NCBI GenBank assembly: GCA_023515725.1
Contig: JALDTO010000025.1
Span: 1 to 64,000 of the forward strand
Length of the DNA: 64,000 bases
From: Amoeboaphelidium protococcarum X5
Taxonomy: Eukaryota > Fungi > Aphelidiomycota
Reading direction: 5' to 3'
Below the pieces are notes generated by a model that made no database searches, had not been told where the DNA came from, and was given only the letters and a program-made list of their open reading frames with translations. This document shows positions 10,874-38,022 of the stretch, piece by piece. The first letter of the stretch is position 1. Every line of letters begins with the position of its first letter. The position numbers and the translations under genes were made by a program.

Positions 10874-12313
10874 ATGTAGCGATTCTGTAGTAGTCTATCA
10901 AGTAAAGTCCGCTTGCATCCGTTGTCAGTTATCAAAATAGCTGAAGTAAATGTAAATGGACGTAGATACTATTCAGCGACAACATCAGACTCTGTATCTG
11001 AGATTGTGAAGCAGGTGGCTTCCACACTTAAAGAGTCTAAATCATAAAATTCAACCTCATCAACCACATCAACGTCCACAAGTAGCAGCGAAACTGTGAA
11101 TCTAATCAAAGATGCCAAGTTTGAGTTCCAGAAGGTGTGGAATAATCTGGAGTAGAAAATGGGTGGTAGCGAGCGGATGGTTCTTCCTTACGAACTCGTG
11201 TGGCTAATGGGCAGTCCGGCCAGTGGGAAAGGCACCAATACGCCGGCGATCCTGAAGGCTCGTGGTATTACTAACGCTCCCATTGTGATGAGCAATCTCC
11301 TCAACAGTGCGGAGATGAAGAAGCGAATTGACAGAGGAGAGATGGTGGATGATGCTAAAGCTCTTGAGTTGCTTCTCACTGCTCTTCTAAAATGTGATAC
11401 CAATGTCGGCGTGTTAATTGATGGTTTCCCGCGTACAGAGGTGCAGGTTGAGTATTTGAAATTGCTTCACGAGAAGATGCATGAACTCCGCAATGTCTTT
11501 CTTAATACTGAACACTAACAAAAGTTCAATAGACCGATATTTAGAATCGTCGTGCTATACATTGATGAAAAGGAGTCGGTGCGGCGATAGTTGATGCGCG
11601 GCAAGTTGGTGCGCAAACATAATGAACTTGTGCATAAGACTTCTGGTAGTAAATAAGACCTGCTGGTGGAGAGAGTCACTGATTATGATGAAGATTTGAT
11701 CCGGGCTCGGTACAAGATATTTACTCAGCACTTTAGTGCCCTGTAAAAGCTAAAGTAATTGTTTCCATTTCACCTGATAAATGCAGAAGGTTCTATCGAA
11801 GAAGTGGTGCGCTCAATATGGCGCGAGTTTGAATATCAATCATCTCAAGAGTTGGATCAATCAACATACGATGCCATCTAACACATCCCTGTGGCAGATA
11901 AGATTGGAGTTCATGCCAGGCAAGAATTGGTGCGAAGATTAGACTCTTACATGTTCCATTACAGATAATAGTTTACCGAATGCATTCAAATGGTGGAATA
12001 GTTATTTGTACCTGCGATATAGCGTCATGCAATCAGCGGCTACGGTATAGTTAGAGTTGATGGAGAGCATATTAAAAGTGAGCGTCAAGTTGACATGATG
12101 ATGGACATTCTTTCTGAGCGCGGATACCACGTAACTGTGGACAAGCGTATAATCAACGTGCCGGTTAAAGTAAATCCTGATACTTTTGAAATCATCAGTC
12201 AACGTAATCCGGTGTATGTTTTCAAGGTGAGATTTGCTCAACATGGAATTCGCGGCGTCTTCTCTGCTGATGATCCTAAAGAGTATACAAACACTTTGAA
12301 GGTTTCTGAATGA
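10874..12313 (+). CDS. Long-type adenylate kinase-family protein with probable mitochondrial presequence, 479 aa
   Basis: P-loop WLMGSPASGKGT, GEMVDD, GVLIDGFPRTEVQ and a large C-terminal extension. N-terminus MQRFCSSLSSKVRLH...RRYYS is Arg/Ser-rich. Confidence 0.85.
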
Positions 12314-12866
12314 ATGATTCGATGAATACATTTCACGGGATTCAATGAATATTGAATAAATGAATTACAAACTAGAGTCACCTGGTTCATACACATTTAG
12401 TATGTATGTGCATTTTATTCGTGCATACATTATGCATGAGGTGTCAAGAACTTGTTTTAACAAACTTGGTACAAATTTGACATGGCAACAACTAATTTTT
12501 GATCGAAATCAATAAATAGACTCCATAACAGCAGTATATAACACATTGTGTGGTGTTTACGCGCTGTGTATTCTGTGTATACAGGTGTTCACGAATTATG
12601 AATGCGCTGTGAGTCATGTTTTCTCCGCTCGTGTGAGGCGGGTCATGTGTTTCGCAGAGTTTTCCGTGGCGTTGTGCTGCATCGTAATTGTGAGTCATTC
12701 CAGATCGGATTACAACAACAACAACGGACGAGCGGCGTGAATACAAACAAAAGTGTCACCAACCGCAGAGCAATGGCGGCAACTTCTCCTCGGCAACCAT
12801 CTTACTTTAATTATCATCTCTTGCCGGCAAGTAGATTTTGACACTGCGTATAACTGCACTAATTCT

Positions 12867-14069
12867 ATGGTAACAATGTCTTCAGAAAGGATGGATGTCA
12901 GCTTCTTGATTCATGATAATGATGGTGAAAATGACGATTATCATCATCATGTAGGCGGCGATGAATACGACGCTGCGGAGAGTAAGCATGATCACTCGGC
13001 CGCCGCCGCTGCAGCCTAATAATAATGTCCGAATGATGTACTCCTGAATAGTGATAGTTCAAGAATGTTACCTTTGGCTAATAACTCGCACTTATATAAA
13101 ATGCATTTGCTGGGCGAAGGAAAACCTCATTAGTGCGATTCCCCGAATTGTCTCTTCAAATATGCGCAGCCAAAGACATGGTAAACCGATTTTGACAGCA
13201 AAACTACAAAGCCGATACCACAAGCGGTAATCAGAAATGTCGCTGATCACAATAGGCGATACTCTCCCATCAAGCCTGGCTATGTATTTTAGCATTCTTA
13301 GTAGTAATAGTAGTAATAGTAGTAGTTGTTGTTGTAATAGTAGTAGTAATAGTAGTAGTAGCGACAAGCGATTGGCCCATTACATCATTACCAGCAGTAA
13401 CATAATGTCAACTTCTAGTATCCGAGACCGCTTACAATCTCCTATGTTTCAGAGGACTCTCAAGGTGTCACAGCTCAATCTCCACCGTCTTTTACGCCAA
13501 GAACTTCGCTCTCTGCTGTATCAGTCGCCGATCATCACTCTGGGAATCCTCATACACCCATAGACAATGCTCTGGATGAAGAAGCTATCAGAAGGCTGTT
13601 CATGGCTGCCGAGTCAAGTAAGAATGCAGCCAAGGCTAAGCGAGATTCTGCCATGTTGGCTCTGCTGTTGGATCTGAAGCTGGCCTGTCAGCGTATAGCT
13701 GATCTCAAGTACAAAGATGTAAAGGGTATGGTTGATGGATCCTTCTGTGGTCTGTATAGATACGGCAAGGCCATGTCTGAGCCTACTCGCCACATCAAGT
13801 GTCTACACTTAACCAAGGTCAAGATCTTGGAATGGATAGACTTTTGCCGCAACTAATTTAATTGGTCATTCGATGATGAAGCTCCTGTGTTCGTTCCTCT
13901 GCCTATATTTGGTGATCAGCACGTTCCTAGAAGAATGCCGCTGAAGCGTGATGCCATAAGTAAAGTTTTCAGTTCAATCAAGAGTGTGAGTGGAGTCAGC
14001 ATGTCCAAGGATATGGTGAATCGCACGACTTTAACAGATCAATTGGCTTAGAAATAGAATATTACGTGA
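12867..14069 (+). CDS. PolyQ/low-complexity protein with C-terminal degenerate tyrosine recombinase (phage integrase/Xer-like) domain, ~400 aa
   Basis: Single frame under table 6 (alternative ATG at 12876). C-terminus ALDEEAIRRLFMAA..KRDSAMLALLLDLKLACQRIADLKYKDV..RYGKAMSEPTRHIKC..ILEWIDF..DEAPVFV..PLKRDAISKVFSSIKSVSGV follows the order of integrase catalytic-domain motifs. Confidence 0.7.
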
Positions 14070-14360
14070 CAGTATTATATATCGTTTTAATATATGTATT
14101 TTGTGGTCACTTGTGAATTTCTGCTTTCTCCTTTCTCTGTGGATTTGCTATAATAGTATAGGCCCGAGTAGTTGATTGGCCATAGTTAGATCACGAATTG
14201 AACTCGCCCAATCAACGTGCATTGTACTATCCTCATCACTCACTATCCTGCACACCTTCATTTGCTTCCTCTTAAGTTATTTATTGAATTTCAATGCTTT
14301 ATCGTTTGATACTATACACTGGGTATTTAATAAATAATGAATTGGAATATAACAAGATTT

Positions 14361-15191
14361 ATGATTTAGTTAATTGTGCTGATATCAGTGTTATGGGGAG
14401 TAAATGGTTAGAGCAATGGCACCACAGAGGATACCAACAACACTTAATCATCATCGTCACCTTAATCTTCACCATCCTCTAACTCAAACTCTACAGGTGT
14501 ACCGCTATATCAAAACAATACAAATAATCCTCTAGGAATGGTAATATTCTACGCTCCTCAATATGATGATTTGAAGGGGAAATTTGGCGCATGTATCAGA
14601 GTAGGATCAGCATTTACCAACGTGTCAATTACACAGCCCTGGTAAGTCAGATTTAGATACACCAACGCTGAGATTGCGATTGAGTAGAATAAAGTGGTGC
14701 TAATACAACGCGTCAAAGATGCTGCAGGAGACCCTGGCTTCTCTCTGACGCCACCAACACAGGCATTGAGTAGAATTGAAGGCAGAAAATGGTCATCGCT
14801 GATGTGTTTCAATGGCACTTATCCCCCTCTACCGTCTCAATAATAGTCACAGTAAGACGCGTTATAAAATGTGCCACTTCCTGATCAATTCGATATGATG
14901 ATTCAAGACTTTGGACCAGATGGTTAAAATTTCTAGGCTGTATTCCAGGCATCGTATTAGAATCTTACTAATGTACCTACTACTCCCCCTGTTAACTTTC
15001 TCCGGATAATCGCGGCGGATCCTCAATCGGCCACCATAAAATCAAAGCCTCAGCTAGCCGGCGCAGTAATTGGCTCAATTGGCGCGGGCCTCATAATATC
15101 TGCTATAATCGCCTTCTGCTTAAGGTCAAAGGGAAATGGCTCTGGATTTCAGGCAGAAGATGATGATGACTCGATGATGTTTGGTCTTTGA
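14361..15191 (+). CDS. Hypothetical type I membrane glycoprotein, 276 aa
   Basis: Signal peptide MIQLIVLISVLWGVNG, Ser/Thr/Asn-rich stalk with several NxS/T sites, TM segment LAGAVIGSIGAGLIISAIIAFCL, short acidic tail. Ends at TGA. Confidence 0.72.
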
Positions 15192-15297
15192 ATCTATATT
15201 AAAGATTGAGAATATATATATATTACTTTTGTTATAATTAAATTCCATTTTATACAATCGATATTGAGTTTTTATTCATATCAAAATAATGCTCAAG

Positions 15298-16897
15298 TCA
15301 ATTGATTAGTGAAGATAGAGCATCGATAAATTGAGTAGAAAAGTTGTCATCATCAAACTCCATAGCGCGCAATCTACCAGCCTGTTGAATCTATTATCGA
15401 TCCTTTTTAGACATTTATAAAATCTACGCAATAAAGTCAGCATAGCCATCTTCATCCTATTCCACAAATCCTACAAAAGCAATTCTGACGTTATAAGATC
15501 AAGTTATAAATGTAAACAGTATGAACAATACCTGTGGGTTAACTATTATGTTTGACCACAATGTCCATGAGAGGACCACCGGATGCGTTTGCAATCGGAA
15601 TCACACCTGCAGCCATGTACTCTACAATGCCAATGCCAAAATGCTCATTATGCATTGTGTGTATTCCTATCATGGCTCGACTGAGATAATCTTTGAGTAC
15701 TTCATACGGCGCATTGAGTACAAATTCAACATGACTGTCAATGTCCAGCTGCAGGGAGAGTCTCTTCAAATCGGCCACACGTTCATGATCACCTGCATTT
15801 CTGCATCCACCAATAAGCACCAGCTTGACGTTATTCTTCAATCGCGGATACTTTAATAAAAACCTGGCAAATGCTTTCAATTATAATTGATGATTCTTCT
15901 CTGGTCTAAATTGCCCAATTGATACTATAATCTTTTCTCTATCAGCTTTATTACTACTACTACCACCAATACTGGCGAGTTATTGCACATTACATGGTGG
16001 ATAGATTTTGTACAATCTATCAGAGACATTCCATAGCGATTTTATATGAGCCTCTGTCCAAGATGAGTTGACCATAACACAATCGGCATACTAACCAACA
16101 CATCCATACAACAATGCAAAGATTCTATAATAAACCGACTTGATAGCAGTGAATACACGTCTGAATCCAATCACCCTATTATTAAACGTATCTTATCCAC
16201 TCTCCACCGCATGCAACATATCAGAACTAATAGTGGGATAATGAACATAGCACGCAATCTTACACCCACAGAAAGTCTTGACCAATGGATAAACAAAAGC
16301 ATATCCCATAGTATCAATAAAAATATCTAATTAGCCACAATTTCTGATTGCCTCATAGCCAAGAACCATTGATCCAAGACTCTGAAATAGCAGTGTAAAT
16401 CTGGGATAAAGCTTATCCTCAACCAGGAATCTCTTCTTCAGAAATACAAATTAGACAGGCAGTGGTAACTCAATATTAAATCTATCCTTGGCTTTACTCA
16501 AAATCTACTCTGGGGAGGCATCTAAATCACCAGTGAATATTATGAAATCCCCATTTGGATATTGTTTCATACAAGCCAGTAGGGCAACCCATAATACACG
16601 CTCACCACCACCTCCAGCATTGCAATAAGGATGAAAGAAGCCAATTTTCATAGATCTTGGCGTTGTTTAAACTGCGTTGCCATCTTTGATATTCTTTTTG
16701 TACTTTTAGGTGGAGCCTTTAACAGGCTGATATTTATTATCACTGCTATTAGAGAGGCTAATATTTCTTCTACCAGCAGAAGTTGAACTAATCTACTTGG
16801 AACTCTAGACGGGGATGATCAGATTAGAGGCAGACTTTATTGTAATTGACACTATAGTTATAGTGAGCACATACAGAAAATATATAAAATCCAGCAT
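15298..16897 (-). CDS. ALG11: Alpha-1,2-mannosyltransferase ALG11 (one intron, 15471-15531)
   Basis: [57 protein letters not shown] 61-nt GT..TGTAG intron restores [13 protein letters not shown]. Confidence 0.95.
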
Positions 16898-17210
16898 TCT
16901 TAATCCACAGCCAGACAATCTATTGTCTGTCTACCACCTAATAGAGCTTTTACAGAGCAGAGCCGGGGGAATGTATGGAGAGAGAGATACCGTGCTGTTT
17001 GCAAGAAGGAGAAACATCTGCTGCTGTCAAAGCAAAGCGAACGAGAACGGTTCAACGCGTGAAAGAACCAACAAAGTGATGTACATTGTTCAACTGACCT
17101 ATGGTGATAGCCAGTCAGGATTTATACCAAATTTTTATTTTTAAAGTGACAAAGGTTGAAGAAGAGATTATAATGAAATGCTTTATTTAATAGTTATGTA
17201 TTAGAGTATT

Positions 17211-29674: not shown

Positions 29675-30604
29675 TCATTTCATTTTACCAGAGAGTATAA
29701 CTTCATTGTTGAGTAAGTAATCAGCATCTAGTATGTAAAACTTGTGAATATGGACAGACACGATGCCAGTTACGAGGTGCCATAGTGAGTGCGCATCAAA
29801 CACGAACCAGAGTGGAGGAAAGTCGAATACTTCCAACAACATACCAAGCATTACAGTCACGATAAGAATCAACAGAAATCGCGCGTGAAAATGCTTCCAC
29901 TTTAGTGATATCCAAACTATCCATATGAAATTATGAGCTAATCCAATTGATACGCCGGCAATCATGTTGTAAGTATAATCGAATCGCTCTCTATTGGTCA
30001 GATACAGAATATGACATGTGTAAAAGAGTACAGAAATAAATGCAGACATACCGGCAATCCTCTTCCATTGAGACCGCTTAAATTCAAAAGACATTCGGAC
30101 AGTTGCGTAGAACATTCCATAAACAATGGACAACATTGCGGCAAAGTAATCCATCCTCTCGGTCCACGGCATATCTTTGTAATGGAATACAGACGACCAT
30201 ACCCAGGCATTCATCTGAGTGATAAACAGAATCATTAAGGGCATTTTCAACTTGAATTTTGATGATACTCGTCGCTGTACCTTCAAGAGCCCGCGACTCT
30301 GACCATACAAATTCAACAGACTGAACAGCACTGACGCTGGTTCTTAGAGTCCAAATATCCTTTTGAATGGCCATTTTCCGTAATACTGCTCAATGCTCTC
30401 TCCGCTTTTCATATTATGATTAACCATCTTAAACATGCAGTCGTATTTGCATTTATCTAAGCAGCTATACCGAAACAGAGATTCTACTTCATCAATGGGA
30501 CAGGCGCAAGACTTCAAACATGCTTGATAGTTGATATCACGGTCGCCGCTTGACCCTTGTATTCCATGTAGAAAGCAAGCCAAAGCGATAATAAGCGTAA
30601 TCAT
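29675..30604 (-). CDS. PER1: GPI remodelling protein Per1/PGAP3, 309 aa
   Basis: SSGDR..YQACLKSC, CKYDCM, QYYGKWPFKRIFGL(Q=TAA)EPAS, NAWVWSSVFH, TERMDYF, LEVFDFPP..DAHSLWH. Confidence 0.95.
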
Positions 30605-30928
30605 GAATTACCGGTCTCCATAATGTAGCAGCATCTTATTTTCCTTATTTCAAACCCAAACGTCAAAGAATTGAATTGCGGGAAACTTTCATTCGCTCGC
30701 TCTGTTACTGGACTGAGGCTAAAACAGCATAGAGAGACGACCGTAAACTACACGAAGAGAGCGCGCGTTCTATGTCGTTATGTTTTCAGGTCAAGGGGTG
30801 GAACTCATCGCCACAAAGAAGCAATTTTGTTTCAGACAAGATTTAAAATCACTCGTCTGCACTCTTTCGTTCCATCTGCGATTTCTCTTTCACCGCGAAA
30901 CTGCATTAGGGATTGACATCTCTTAGCA

Positions 30929-33900
30929 ATGACAATACTCAAGTTGAACATTAAGAGTCTGGTGAACTTTGCCAAGCAGTCAAATAATGAACAAGGATTC
31001 AGATGCTTATTCATAGCCTTGGTACTGGAGTATATTTAACGTGAGCAGACCAAGGATGGTAATGGTGATGATGATGATGCTGGCACCTCGTATAATCTTC
31101 TCGTTGAATTCTGTACCGAACTGTCTCACGTGGTGCTTCCAGTCCTGAATGATGTGCAGTTATGCAATGAAATACTTTAACAATGTCAGCAAGAACTTCC
31201 GTCATTAAGTGAGCCGTTATATGAGGGCTTTCTTCTGAAATTGATCGCGTTTCAAGACGTGAAACTGCTTCAGGTTCTACTGGAATTCTTTCTCTCCACT
31301 GATCTACCGGCGTGCTTATATGGGCTTTAACTTTACGGTCGTGATGACTGTATTAATGCGCAATTGTTCCATCGGTCACCTCAACTGCGGCCTTATTTGC
31401 AGCAGTCAGGACCGCTGTAATTGAAGTTACTGGAGTGTTCATTAATTTTGGAATCTTACAATGGTTTGGAGTCCATTTAGTACTTGATTGAACGCGATTT
31501 ATGGCTTATAGATACTTATCTGATGGTGGAGATGCTTCTAAATTCCTTATGTGATCCTGCTTAATTCAAAGTAATATCTCAAGTAATTTCGATGCTTGGT
31601 GCTCTGAATTTACATATCGATGGTGAGTAGTGTGTCGAGATACTGGACATATTGCTTGAATTAGAGTTTCCTCCATAAAATCTTTGTGATCATTTAATAT
31701 ATTCAATTGCTATTTAGAAAGTGAATCTTGACATCATCCAGGTGAAAAGATTTACATCCTTCTCCAAAGATGCAAGTGTATTGTACAAGTTTGTTGAGTC
31801 ATATTACCATGATATACTGGTTATGAATTCTAATATCGTGACTGGGTCAAAGCGAAAACGGCCGGATTTGTCTATGAGTCTTATAGCCTGTATACTGCCT
31901 TTTTGCAATGATTCTGAGAAGAGCTAATGGGAGGAGTAACTTTAAGATGGTCTTATGGAATAGTCTGATTAGATGAAGCTGCATGATTTGGATGCTATTT
32001 GCTTAACACTTCTGAAATCGGACGTTAATATCTCTGACAAGTTAAAGGAGGTGTTATGTTTAAAGATATCTCATTTGATATCAATGTGCACAACTGAGTC
32101 TCATTAATATGCAACGCTTTTCTTGGCTCTTCATGGATCTAGGGCTATAATTTAGAATGCATTAGCTGATCATGTTCCTGCTGATGTTCGATTAATTTTT
32201 ATCAATCATTTGAAAAAGAGATTTCATGTTGATTATTCTGATTATAAAGCAGAATCAGAATACGTATTATGTGCTCTTGCTGGTTCTTTGTCTTTCATGA
32301 TTCGGGAGTAGAATTAAATATTGTGGTAGTGCGCAGTTTGTGATGGTAGCGGTAATAATATTTAGTTGCTTGCACTCTCTGAGACCTAAAAGCTTCAGAT
32401 TATTTCATCATGTAAACAAAAGCTGTTTTATAGATCGTTAAAGCATGGGGCTGAATGGACCGTTGAAGATTTGTTGAAGATTGCCAGTTCTAGCGTATAA
32501 AATGGTAAGGCTCATCAGCGGTTTATATTGAATGCTCTTGCAAAGATTTATTTGAGGTCTGCTGGACCGGCTGTCACAGGTGCTGTGGAGTGATGCAAAA
32601 GCTAGCCAAGTTCTGAAAAGACGCTACTTTTATACAGATTCTTTAATAATCTGAGCCTGGGTCAAGTTCTTCATCAGTCCGACTGGATTCAGTGGCTTGC
32701 TTCGTTTGGTACTGTCAATTCTGTCGATGATTGCTTGTTAATGTCCGCTTTTGATACGCTAAGTAGTAATTATGATCAATTGCTAATGGCATTGCCGCCT
32801 GTATTTGTCAAGATGTTGACAGCTAGGGAGGATAACGAGATGGCCATACGCTATTTTCTGGATGCTTTTCTGTATCATCATCAGTTTGATGAACGTGCTC
32901 TTAACATGCCATTTGTGTGTGCCCAGCTTGTTTTTATGAGACATGGGAATTCCTTGAATAAGTTGGTTGCAATTATGTCTAGAGGAAGCGTTGTGTAACT
33001 TCTTGGAGCATATGTGCCTGATATTCTGGCTTATATCTTTACTCGTGTACAGGATGATAGTCGATAGAAAGCTCTGCGATTCTTCGAGGAGTGTATCAAC
33101 TCCTCCACATCTGAGACGTAAATATCTCTTGCTGATATAGTCAGACCATATTTCTAGCAAATGGTGTCGAGAATCTGTTGGTATTTAAGTGATCAAGATG
33201 CTGTTGTTGCAGCCGCTGCACTGGATTAATTGAAGGCTGTGGTGCATATGGTCGCACCTAATGTAACTGACTATATGATTAAATTGACCGAGTGTTTGCT
33301 TGCGCTAATCTTTCATTTGGCAGTGTCTGTTGTGCAAAACCAGCATGTATCAAGGTAATTTAAATTACATTCCATCAGTTCGTTTGCAAAGTTCTTGAGA
33401 CTATTGGCGGGCAAAATTGATACCTATTCACTGCAATTGTTCAATTTAGTTGATTAATGTAAAAAGCACGGATTTGATACTAGCTCTATTTGGGAGTCTT
33501 TTATTGACGGCTTCAGCTGCGATTTGTGCCGCGAGAACGTTTGCCAGCTGCTTTGTGGATATTTGAATCTTCCCCTAGGTACTGATAGCAGATTATCATC
33601 TGATTAAAAGACGTACCTGGATCTTCTATCTAACAAAGCTTCTATTTAAAGCAGCAAGACCGGTTCGTATATAGTGTAAAATGTTATGAAACTACGTGGC
33701 GTGTATGGAGAACTAACGTCTAATTTTTCCAATGATGGGACTTTGTATGATGATGTTTTCAATATTATTGGCACGTAACATAAGAACGTGACCGCCACAG
33801 TATTGCAGTTGCTTTCGCGTGATATTATACGTATGAACTTAGTGAGGTATGTGGATACGAGTGAGCTTGCATCAAGACTTGTGCTTTTGACTAAAAATTT

Positions 33901-36900
33901 TCGCTGGTCGGATGACGATCTGGTCGTTAACTCTATACTCAGAGATGCTATTTCTATGCTCAATGAATTGGTTTATCAGCAAGATGTCCAAGCTTTGGAG
34001 ACGAGCAAGTCGTAGAATTTCATATAAGTGCACATACTTGCGGATTAGGAGAATGCAAAGTAAGTTGTGCGATATATTATGGCGATTATAACGTCATTCT
34101 TGATACCGCCTTTGACTTCTGCTCGCGATAGCAAAACTAATGATCGTTATTCATTCGTGATTCAAGAGCTGCTGTCTGCTACGGGCTTTAAGAATATTCA
34201 GTAGATATAGTCGTCGAGTAATACATCAATTATATCTCATGTCTGGAGGAGTTTGAATCATAAGGAATCGGAGATACTTTTACCGCTGCTGGCGTCGTAA
34301 TATCATATGCAGTTAGGTAGCACTTAGGTTGACCTGTCGGAGTATGTCTTTGAAAGTCCTAAATCGTATGCTGATTTCCTTCGTGTAATGGTGAACACGC
34401 TTATCAATATTTTGACTTCATCTCTATTAAGGCGCATTTTCTGGCCATTTAAGGCTCTGTTCACTGCTCATTTTGTTGATGCAGAGATTGCTTTGACGTT
34501 ATTATCTAATCTGGCTAGATGTGTGATGACTCAAGGAGTAGCGTATGTCAACTTTCTCACTGTTCATTACAAAAGATTTTGTGGTGCAAAGCCTTTATCG
34601 ATGTCTGCGGACGATTATTCCAAGTGTCTCAAGATGTTGTTTGACGTTTATGATCAGATTGTTGGCTTCAGTTTCTCCAGTATGTTTTCTGTTAAAAATG
34701 GCGAGCTTGATTAGTGCATTGTAAACTTTATGAATGGTGTTGATGATTCTCTCATTGTATCTGCTTCTAAGCAGTATAATGACTATTATAGATTATAGAG
34801 GCATAGTGAGAAACTACTGTAGGGGAAGCTATAGCCTGATTTGGTGCTGTTGAATAACTTACTGTCTGCGCAATAGAATCTTGGTTCATCTGATGATGTC
34901 TTGTATCTGATACAAAAGTGCAGGGAGAATGATTCTGCTATCCGCGGACGATCTGATGTGTCCTAGATGATCATGTGCTACACTGCTCAGTAAGACGTGT
35001 AGCTCATCTCTTAGATTGCTAATTCATGCCATTCTGAGTTGAAATCGCCTGATATTATCAGACTTAGATTAGCTGCTGAAGATTATGAGGGTGTCAGTAA
35101 GATCCAGGATGATGATGTAAGTGATTTTGTTGTTGAAGCAGCTGCTCATTTATAGAACTGGGATTTGGTCGATGACAAGTTCTAACATAATTAAGCTAAT
35201 AATGAACGCTTTAAGTTGAGAGGACATTTTATTCGTTTGTTATCCTTATTCAAAGTTGGTCATTAGGAGAAGTTATACGAATAGTTACAACTGAATGACT
35301 TCAATGTGTCGAATAGTCTGTTTAAGTGTAAGAAAGAGGAAACTCCGTTAGTTCTCTTTGAATCCCGGGTCTTATCGAGATTGTAAAAGCTTATCAAGGG
35401 CGAAACTGTCGATTGGAACCAATGCTTTGATGATGACATGTTGTACTTGTCTCACCATGGCATTGATACGCTCACTAAGTTAGAGTCTCTCAAGCTTTGG
35501 GAACTATGTACACGGAATCTGAGCCTTGATCGAGAGTTGGAGTCATCTATTTGCATTTAAAAGTGTAAACTGTTGCGGAAAGCCAATTTGCCATAAGTTG
35601 CATTGAAATCGGTATTGTCCATAGATGCTTAAATGCAAAATAGCGGTTTACTTCTTGAGTTCGCAAAAGTTCATGTTGCCGTAGGGAAGCCGGATATCGC
35701 TATCAATGAGTTGAGATAGTGTATTGCGCCCAAATTATCCCAAATAACAACTCAGAAGGGATCACAGCCGAATGACCCATTTGGATCACTATGTATGTAC
35801 CAGACAAAGTTGATGCTCCAGTACTATCCGGAAAATAGTTCTGAAATTCGTTCTTTACTGGCAGCAGCCAAAAAGTGCCTGCCCAAGTCGGAAAAGTTGC
35901 TGCATACTTTTGGCTCCTACGAGTTGTCTCTGCTTAGTGCATCTAAAGACCGGTTCGAGCGAGCATTGGCCGATTTCCCTAAAGGCAAGTCTTTGAAAAG
36001 TCAAGATTCAGAAATTCACTAGTATTTCCACAGAATGGTGGCCAACATGTTTACTGCTACTCGAGCGTATTGTCTAGCTGCTATTTACGGATCTCAGCAT
36101 ATCTTTGAGTCACTTCCAAATGCTATCTAACTTTGGCTTGATTTTACCGAAAGATAACAACTGTTCCTGGGAATTAACGATGCTATATCCAAGACGTATC
36201 ATGAGTTTTATGATCAGTTTCTGACTACAATGATAAGTTTTGTGTAAAGAGTCCCCGCATACAATTTGTTGGTCAGTCTATCTCAGATTTAGTCTAGGCT
36301 GACACACTCTGATGAAAAAGTTTGGGGTATTTTGAGAGATATGCTGCTCAAGCTTTTGCGCGAGTTTCCTGATTAGACACTGTGGCAGTTGATAAGCTCT
36401 TACAAGTCATCTTCCAAATTGCGTGTTAGTAGAGTATAAGAAGTATTCAATTCCTCAAAAGAGTAGTCTACGAAAATAAAGGTATGTGTTAATATATGAT
36501 GATAAGGCTGACGTTGTATAATATTCACTATGTAGAATTGCAAGAGCTTGGTTGATTTAATCTTCGTCATGGCTTATTCTAAAAAGTTCGACTCCAAATC
36601 CAAGTTTAGTATTGCAAAGGAATTTCCCGAGTTGAAGAAGTTGTGTCCTATCAACCTGGCCATCCCAATCTAGTCAGCCCTGACTCCTCTACTACCACCC
36701 AAGAATTTCTCGGGAAGCAATTGGCGGCCATTTTAGGACAATCTGGTGTATTTTGACTCTTTTGAAGACGTTGTCGAGTTACTGAACAGTTTAATGAGGC
36801 CAAGAAAGCTTAAAGTGAGAGGCAGTGATGGCAATCATTATACTCTGCTTTGCAAGCCTGGTGATGATTTGAGAAAAGATCATCGCGTCATTGAGCTGTT

Positions 36901-38022
36901 CGGTGTCATAAATAGTCTATTTGGAAAAGATTCTGATTGTACTCAACGAGATCTAGGTAAGGCTATATGTTATGAGCCATTTGCTTATTGCTCGGGATTA
37001 TTACTTGAAATTGTGTAGGCATCTTGACTTATGCTGCGATTCCTTTGAGTGAAAGCTGCGGTCTCATTGAATGGGTGGATAATACTTGTACTTTTCGTAA
37101 AGCACTCGAGCATTACTACTCCAAGAATTAGCGAAGTGACCTATCGGCTTCCAAGTACACAAAGTGGAAAGAACTGGGTAAAGGAGCAACTGCACTGACA
37201 AAGTATTATAAAGAGACTCTGCTTCCAATGTTCTCACCTGCTGTGTTCTAATAGTGGCTTTTCGAACGCTTCGTTGATCCACCGTCCTGGTATCGTGCTC
37301 AAAAGAGATGGACTCGCTCTGTTGCTGTGATGTCTATTGTCGGATTCATATTTGGTCTCGGCGATCGTCATTTGGAAAACATTCTGGTGCAGGAAACCAG
37401 TGGTCAGGTGTTACATGTAGATTTCAACTGCCTGTTCGACAAGGGACTGCTACTGGAGTATCCTGAACGGGTCCCTTTCAGGTTAAGTCAGAACGTGGTG
37501 GCAGGCTTTGGTTTCTGTGGCGTGAATGGTACATTCAGTAAGTCTTGCGAGCTGACCATCCAGATGTTACGGAAACACAAGGAGACTATCTTGACAATGT
37601 TGAGCACCTTTGTGCATGACCCCCTGATTGAGTGGTCTAGTAGTAGCAGTAGCAGGAAGGATAAAGCACAGCAGCTGACTGACAACCACTACATGATGGC
37701 GAATCGTGTTGTAAGGACAATATAGCGGAAATTGGATGGCTATCTTGGATTGCTCTATGAATACTAAGAGGCGGAAAAGGTTCACAATAGTGCACATATC
37801 AAAGCTGTTGTTGCTTATACTGGTGGAAAGAGTGCGTCTTCTTCCTCATCAACATCCGCGGCCTCCTCAAACAAGAGCCACACTCTGTCTGATGACTAAT
37901 TCCCGTACAAGTACGATGTCAAAGCTTTATCCTCACAGTAACAAGTTAAAGAGCTCATTTCCATGGCCACTGAAGAAGTTAATCTCGCCAGAATGTGGAT
38001 AGGCTGGAATGCTTTCATGTGA
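30929..38022 (+). CDS. ATR: ATR/Mec1/Rad3 PIKK checkpoint kinase (introns 36482-36535 and 36957-37018; unexplained in-frame TGA at 32591)
   Basis: SLMRPRKL, LLCKPGDDLRKDHR, GLIEWV, GLGDRHLENIL, HVDFNCLFDKG..PERVPFRL, FVHDPLIEW, FATC end NLARMWIGWNAFM-TGA, preceded by a long helical N-terminal region in one frame. Start codon is less certain. Confidence 0.88.

Follow-up and report, generated by a model that had tools for sequence, protein, structure and literature searches.

A conserved gene of Amoeboaphelidium protococcarum with a truncated, apparently inactive tyrosine-recombinase domain as a candidate DNA-binding repressor

The gene described here lies in a 64,000-nucleotide stretch of the genome of Amoeboaphelidium protococcarum X5 (contig JALDTO010000025.1, positions 1 to 64,000; referred to here as the window). 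This organism is an algae-parasitizing relative of fungi, and the aphelids are the sister group of fungi. To our knowledge, gene regulation is almost unknown in aphelids, a group relevant to the question of how fungi arose. The features of the locus are collected in Table 1. The reading frame of the gene is closed by TGA and contains no internal TGA, and TAA and TAG likewise encode glutamine in the neighboring genes of the window, where those for Dicer, ATR, and adenylate kinase (ADK) are open only under table 6. From the ninth codon on, 29 of the 39 glutamine codons are TAR, compared with about half in the neighboring genes; GC3 is like that of the neighbors. As queries, we used either stop-free pieces taken separately or the database protein P0001. 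A stop-free piece of the domain retrieved a database protein of 400 amino acids in a cluster with GenBank records of A. protococcarum, and the proteins of this gene are named "hypothetical protein" in the databases. Met9, at position 12891, may be the true start; the homologues begin at a matching MD motif. The gene is expressed, a point that the first-pass annotation, made from the sequence alone, had left to be checked: it is covered by an assembled transcript as well as by a freshwater metatranscriptome. The run that yielded the transcript (X4) carries no label but can be taken as RNA, since its intergenic spacers are empty and the ALG11 intron is spliced. The transcript leader holds a short upstream open reading frame (ORF), and in the second genomic copy of the gene, on contig C155, an indel brings the ATG of this ORF (window position 12773) in frame with the gene. 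A repeat search found no terminal repeats or element ends around the gene, in agreement with the annotation.

Table 1. Features of the locus in window coordinates.
Feature	Position	Strand	Remarks
Adenylate kinase gene	10874..12313	+	Conserved upstream neighbor; upstream in loci L004, L005, L006, and L012
Transcript contig, 1361 nt	12736..14087	+	Run X4, record 18; ends are not mapped start/stop sites
Short upstream ORF in transcript leader	12773..12841	+	Out of frame with the gene
Coding sequence	12867..14069	+	400 aa, table 6, no intron; GenBank protein identical
N-terminal motif MDVSFLI (family MD[IVL]xx[LIF][LIT])	12891..12911	+	Candidate Tup1-binding motif
Disordered S/P/Q/H-rich region, aa 16-231	12912..13559	+	pLDDT mostly <50; composition
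PolyQ tract	13299..13364	+	Nearly all TAA/TAG codons; varies between copies, and most homologues lack it
Truncated tyrosine-recombinase catalytic domain, predicted to be catalytically dead, aa 232-394	13560..14048	+	Matches XerD ~107-259
Box I remnant	13632..13721	+	XerD R148 = Ala273 (13683-13685)
Invariant LKRDAxSKVF helix	13941..13970	+	Predicted to recognize DNA; XerD R220 and Q221 correspond to R361 and D362
Box II remnant SKDMVNRT	14004..14027	+	XerD H244 = D382, R247 = N385
Single-pass membrane protein gene	14337..15191	+	Immediate downstream neighbor; homologues in the same place in L004, L005, L008, L009, L011, and L018
ALG11-type glycosyltransferase gene	15452..17026	-	Conserved convergent neighbor; intron 15469-15531

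The last ∼165 amino acids had been read in the first-pass annotation as the integrase catalytic fold, and the motifs that it quoted do stand where it had placed them. An AlphaFold2 model of residues 229 to 394, built with ten family rows, reached a pLDDT of 87 and a pTM of 0.85. When this model was compared with 48,161 PDB representatives, all 29 structures with a Z score of at least 5 were tyrosine recombinases, dead derivatives of them, or topoisomerase IB. The top match was XerD (Z score of 13.4, 145 aligned residues, root mean square deviation of 3.8); XerA scored 13.1 to 13.5, Cre 12.4, QRICH1 8.2, and Ndc10 7.5 to 8.0, and the first unrelated fold appeared at 4.3. Foldseek E values taken alone were borderline (best, 1.9e-3). 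Overall TM scores were 0.6 to 0.73, with 0.69 to 0.73 to PF00589 clusters of the ESM Atlas; the top models from both the Atlas and BFVD are bacterial or phage integrases, and phage-integrase clusters also came first by ESM Atlas features (0.97; 179 of 256 features). A family profile aligned over the whole domain with a profile of 75 Xer and phage integrases (P of 94 to 95%, with E values of the order of 1e-7 to 1e-8: 2e-7 local and 1e-8 global), and the annotated gene beneath each of the weak tblastn matches to plasmids is an integrase. Searches of Pfam, PHROG, and PDB with the single sequence, in stop-free pieces, gave no significant match. The best scores of the family to the PF00589 (E value of 0.023) and XerC (0.008) models both lie below the Pfam and NCBIfam cutoffs. 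The domain very probably adopts the recombinase fold, judging from the model; both a structural and a profile match to it, on which the annotation had made its reading depend, are present.

Within this fold, the family lacks the R-K-H-R-H/W-Y catalytic set of active Xer and phage integrases, as well as a core-binding domain. The replacement of the box I arginine by alanine, proposed earlier, holds in the profile alignment (Ala273), and each of the 12 members has A, S, P, or T there. The HxxR box is degenerate, as had also been noted, with D382 and N385 in place of H and R; across the members, the box II histidine is replaced by D, E, S, or V and the arginine mostly by N. The loop around XerD K172 aligns to residues 301 and 302, which vary freely. 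The annotation had matched "YGK" to an integrase motif; we rejected it as the catalytic lysine loop, and the likeness is coincidental, since a single one of 11 family members has K301. Beyond XerD residue 259, and thus before H270 and Y279, there is no further structural match, in keeping with the claim that the protein stops before the catalytic tyrosine. All chains end soon after the box II remnant, and the last two catalytic positions are absent from all members. Alignment and model together indicate that the enzyme is almost certainly inactive, and the pattern across members indicates that activity was lost already in the ancestor of the family.

The first 230 residues are predicted to be disordered except for a polyQ helix, and for this reason we recognize no core-binding domain, as the annotation had supposed; the N termini cannot be aligned between lineages. 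The annotation had further described a fusion to a polyQ region. The tract is present in the protein of the window but is not a feature of the family, being lineage specific and missing from most homologues, and we rejected polyQ as a family trait. A better-conserved element is the pattern MD[IVL]xx[LIF][LIT], which was defined after inspecting the sequences and which opens 8 of the 10 complete N termini, compared with none of 413 methionines in 25 other ORFs of the window; two complete members lack it. It resembles, as a short motif, the N-terminal IxxLL through which yeast MATalpha2 binds Tup1 (PMC4943189). That motif is poorly specified (PMC4943189), and the exact form [VI]xx[IL][LM] occurs in just 4 of the 8 family motifs. 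The host encodes Tup1 in two copies (G000:C264:458599-458896 and C286:105621-105918), with an intron-split Tup_N followed by WD40 repeats. SIN3-like (LxxLAxA) and LPPI motifs were each seen in only three members, neither of them in the protein of the window, and were not relied on.

The 23.6-Mb genome contains exactly two copies of the gene, on contigs C25 and C155, one per subgenome. The order of 13 neighboring ORFs is preserved on C155, which makes the two copies homeologues or alleles, and the gene is the most conserved of the collinear ORFs (94.6% versus 82 to 93%). Of the codons of the domain that differ between the two copies, 18 are synonymous and 2 are replacements (dN/dS of 0.042; Fisher P of 4e-10), and the dN/dS of the N-terminal 144 amino acids is 0.22. 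The purifying selection for which the annotation had proposed to look is thus found in the domain.

The search for orthologues, also suggested there, expanded the family to 12 lineages, namely, A. protococcarum, A. occidentale (KAI3661847.1), and ten uncultured eukaryotes. Across them, the domain is 44 to 62% identical to that of the window, a level similar to that of the adjacent ADK and ALG11 proteins, with one more distant member (P0020) at 32%; a tree of the domain has support for 1 of 9 inner branches. Seven of the 11 other lineages share neighbors with the window (ADK upstream, the single-pass membrane protein directly downstream, ALG11 convergent, and Per1 and ATR nearby), and the remaining four lie on contigs shorter than 2 kb. 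As read from the DNA, nine environmental lineages share the position of a phase-1 intron at the start of the domain (its donor not pinned in two), and six carry a phase-0 GT-AG intron after residue 336; both Amoeboaphelidium species lack the two introns. For homologues with introns, the alignments and searches used individual exons rather than joined models. With a single syntenic and transcribed copy per subgenome, two shared intron positions, and a domain dN/dS of 0.04, the gene is, beyond reasonable doubt, a domesticated host gene, as the annotation had proposed. The synteny also suggests that the uncultured hosts are aphelids. Over window positions 10874 to 17026 and 29675 to 38022, ADK, the gene, the membrane protein, ALG11, Per1, and ATR stay linked with rearrangements, and this linked block spans Amoeboaphelidium and the uncultured lineages. 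The gene for the single-pass protein, with homologues directly downstream of the recombinase-derived gene in six other lineages, forms a conserved pair with it; the A. occidentale copy of the single-pass protein has no Pfam match. At L012:2312-2314, a TAG codon stands in the last exon of the domain where the near-identical L011 has TGG; the difference probably reflects an error of assembly or a null allele.

Pattern scans for the family in viral, prokaryote, and JGI metagenome contigs found no relative, tblastn against phages gave no match, and among the matches of the protein searches there was no named fungal, rozellid, or holozoan protein. These searches do not prove absence, since the word-indexed ones missed even the A. 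occidentale protein; the full HMMER scan was run with a single 99-amino-acid query. The host genome also carries recombinase elements of its own. A CryptonF-type element of 2.5 kb, with an NDC10_II recombinase and a GCR1_C-like tail, is present in eight near-identical copies (L024 to L031, e.g., G000:C146:496770-497786) at unrelated sites, which marks it as recently active, and older diverged relatives are present too. A CryptonA-like tyrosine recombinase ORF (L003:613-2376; G000:C249, ∼841573-843336), with an apparently intact catalytic set, was the sole PF00589 match in the genome search. Searches of the host genome for XerC and DUF3504 returned nothing relevant, and one for the Starship domain DUF3435 gave no match, a blank that carries no information, as its control likewise matched nowhere.

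The helix LKRDAxSKVF is unchanged in 11 of 11 sequences, and K256, K258, R259, K271, K372, and K381 form a further conserved basic surface. In the structure of XerD, Q221, which aligns with D362 of this helix, is predicted to contact a dif base that sets binding specificity (PMC2731167). The conservation of the helix and of the N-terminal motif exceeds the needs of folding. We propose that a Xer/phage-type tyrosine recombinase gene was captured in the common ancestry of Amoeboaphelidium and its uncultured relatives and that no more than the first three quarters of its catalytic domain were kept. The retained helix-turn-helix surface, consisting of LKRDAxSKVF and the basic residues, would bind DNA at a specific sequence but leave it uncut, and the disordered N terminus would recruit the Tup1 corepressor via the MD[IV]xxL[LI] motif, making the protein a lineage-specific transcriptional repressor. 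We infer such a repressor because an invariant helix lies over XerD R220/Q221, the N terminus is disordered and S/P/Q-rich, its motif resembles Tup1-binding motifs, and the host has Tup1. There are precedents: in phages, MrpR is a dead recombinase that serves as a repressor (PMC10516654), and Gcr1, KCTD1, and ZMYM are recombinase-derived regulators (PMC3212892).

On balance, we favor the reading of the gene as a domesticated, dead Xer/phage-like recombinase that acts as a DNA-binding repressor, given what the alignments and the model suggest. Its components differ in strength. The protein likely binds DNA, although Xer-type enzymes clamp DNA with two domains, which may count against tight binding by an isolated catalytic domain. 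A role in regulating transcription is fairly probable from the motifs and the precedents, and a mode of action through Tup1 is a more tentative suggestion, made by analogy with MATalpha2. In the most elaborate version, a truncated Xer/phage integrase catalytic domain, standing alone, came directly from a bacterium or phage rather than through a transposon, gave rise to a eukaryotic family of transcription factors that was fixed early in aphelids, and became a conserved, Tup1-wired regulator of the life cycle; this version is unlikely to hold in all of its parts.

With regard to origin, sequence profiles and models place the domain probably closer to Xer and phage recombinases than to those of Cryptons. 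The family profile scored 19.4 (20 columns) against four CryptonF sequences, where Xer subsets of the same depth gave a median of 30.4 (range, 14.6 to 48.3), and 11.5 against one CryptonA sequence, where such subsets gave a median of 18.0 (range, 9.3 to 38.1); the Crypton sets are shallow, and their scores fall within overlapping ranges. The best single matches are phage Xer-like integrases (E value of 2e-5). An invariant glutamine two places past the lost box I arginine fits the Crypton RG[EQ] as well as the Xer RxxE. No family member has a DUF3504 (PF12012), NDC10_II, or GCR1_C match in Pfam, and together with the weaker Crypton scores, this places the family outside the described Crypton-derived families, as the annotation had assumed. 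One more transposon domestication, from a eukaryotic recombinase element such as a Crypton, DIRS/Ngaro, or eukaryotic virus, would be favored by the recently active CryptonF-type element and the CryptonA-like recombinase of the host and by the poor resolution of recombinase trees (PMC6681497). A Xer-like fold would also suit DIRS donors, since classical DIRS1 integrases belong to the XerC/D-like clade (PMC3537659). We nevertheless consider an element origin less likely, given Crypton scores below the medians of equal-depth Xer subsets (with overlapping ranges), phage Xer-like integrases as the best single matches, the lack of the long hairpin of Cryptons in the domain, and bacterial or phage integrases as the top Atlas and BFVD models. 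The sequence comparisons thus modestly favor a Xer/phage-like donor over the Cryptons of the host, and a prokaryote may plausibly have been the direct source. The donor itself cannot be named, since identity to any recombinase is at most 20% in structural alignments.

Several other functions can be weighed against that of a DNA-binding repressor. With the same origin, the protein could be a coregulator or scaffold that works via partner proteins, with little sequence specificity of its own, in the manner of QRICH1 in the Zincore complex; QRICH1 combines a Q-rich region with a dead recombinase domain and acts as a zinc-finger coregulator (9hjt; PMC13538652). The loss of the core-binding domain would fit, and many invariant residues (box I, W323, W333, and PxFVPL) might serve the structure or an interface with other proteins. 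This is improbable in our view, as the most invariant surface block is basic and maps to the helix by which XerD contacts bases, and the structural likeness to QRICH1 is far lower than that to XerD (Z scores of 8.2 versus 13.4). A structural chromosome protein, i.e., a centromere or genome architecture factor rather than a promoter regulator, has its model in Ndc10/Cbf2, a dead tyrosine recombinase that has been put to use at centromeres (PMC3212892) and that matches the domain with a Z score of 7.5 to 8.0. Strict single-copy retention and a very low dN/dS would suit an essential role of this kind, but there is no NDC10_II or GCR1_C match, and a long, unalignable S/P/Q-rich N terminus that carries a repressor-like motif is what one expects of a transcription factor, which makes this role slightly more improbable still. 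The near-identical recent copies of the Crypton element raise the idea of a defense factor that binds the ends of active host elements or poisons synaptic complexes. That idea is very improbable, however: similarity to the recombinases of the host elements is not detectable, the C-terminal oligomerization helices are missing, and conservation is high and static, in contrast to an arms race. The lack of a significant single-sequence match in Pfam, PHROG, or PDB might point to a decaying mobile-element remnant or to chance resemblance. We ruled this out, leaving it a negligible probability, on the basis of the intact frame, dN/dS, transcript, 12 lineages, synteny, shared introns, and confident fold.

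Compared with known systems, the candidate repressor is nearest in structure to XerC, XerD, XerA, and the phage integrases (PF00589), with which it shares a catalytic fold of ∼145 residues (Z score of 13), the framework of box I, and the XerD R220/Q221 helix. In contrast to them, the family lacks the catalytic R, K, H, R, H, and Y, ends around XerD residue 259, and represents a eukaryotic host gene with a disordered N terminus in place of the core-binding domain. MrpR of SPbeta and SroF of phi3T likewise reuse the tyrosine-recombinase fold as a DNA-binding repressor without catalysis (PMC10516654), repression being predicted in the case of the family. MrpR, however, keeps both the core-binding and the full catalytic domain and acts in a prophage, and with Z scores of 9.9 (MrpR) and 8.8 to 10.5 (SroF) at 7 to 13% identity there is no sign of special kinship. 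The CryptonA-derived DUF3504 proteins (QRICH1, ZMYM2-4/WOC, KCTD1, and KIAA1958) have a domesticated dead recombinase domain too, in their case within eukaryotic transcriptional regulators, and QRICH1 shares a Q-rich region with the protein of the window. The domain of the family is smaller, comes from another lineage, has no DUF3504 match, and is not accompanied by zinc fingers or a BTB domain; QRICH1 is 7% identical (Z score of 8.2). The CryptonF-derived Gcr1, Msn1, Hot1, and Cbf2/Ndc10 are dead, recombinase-derived proteins of the fungal lineage as well, and they bind DNA, as is predicted for the family. Unlike them, the family has no NDC10_II or GCR1_C, and the recombinase remnant is its only folded domain; identity to Ndc10 is 6 to 7% (Z score of 7.5 to 8.0). 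In the ALOG transcription factors of plants, a piece of a recombinase from the XerC/D clade was also recruited in a eukaryote (PMC3537659), but there it is the N-terminal core-binding domain of a DIRS1-type retroposon, whereas the part kept in the family is the other half, the catalytic domain.

The family is real and conserved, and it is apparently undescribed, as we found no description of it in the literature on aphelids or Amoeboaphelidium with recombinases. Its kind is already known, namely, the domesticated dead tyrosine recombinase, of which it is a further variant. The eukaryotic precedents that we found derive either from Cryptons (Gcr1, Ndc10, QRICH1, ZMYM, and KCTD1) or, in ALOG, from the half of the enzyme that is absent here; the present case appears to be a separate domestication event with a different type of donor and a minimal module of 160 residues. 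If this holds, the catalytic half is enough by itself to give rise to a DNA-binding domain. For aphelids, the gene is a conserved, apparently lineage-restricted candidate regulator and marker. The most divergent member of the family (L017; P0020), with 32% identity, is intronless and without the MD motif yet retains LKRDAISKVF; it may represent a paralogue or a lineage that branches deeper.
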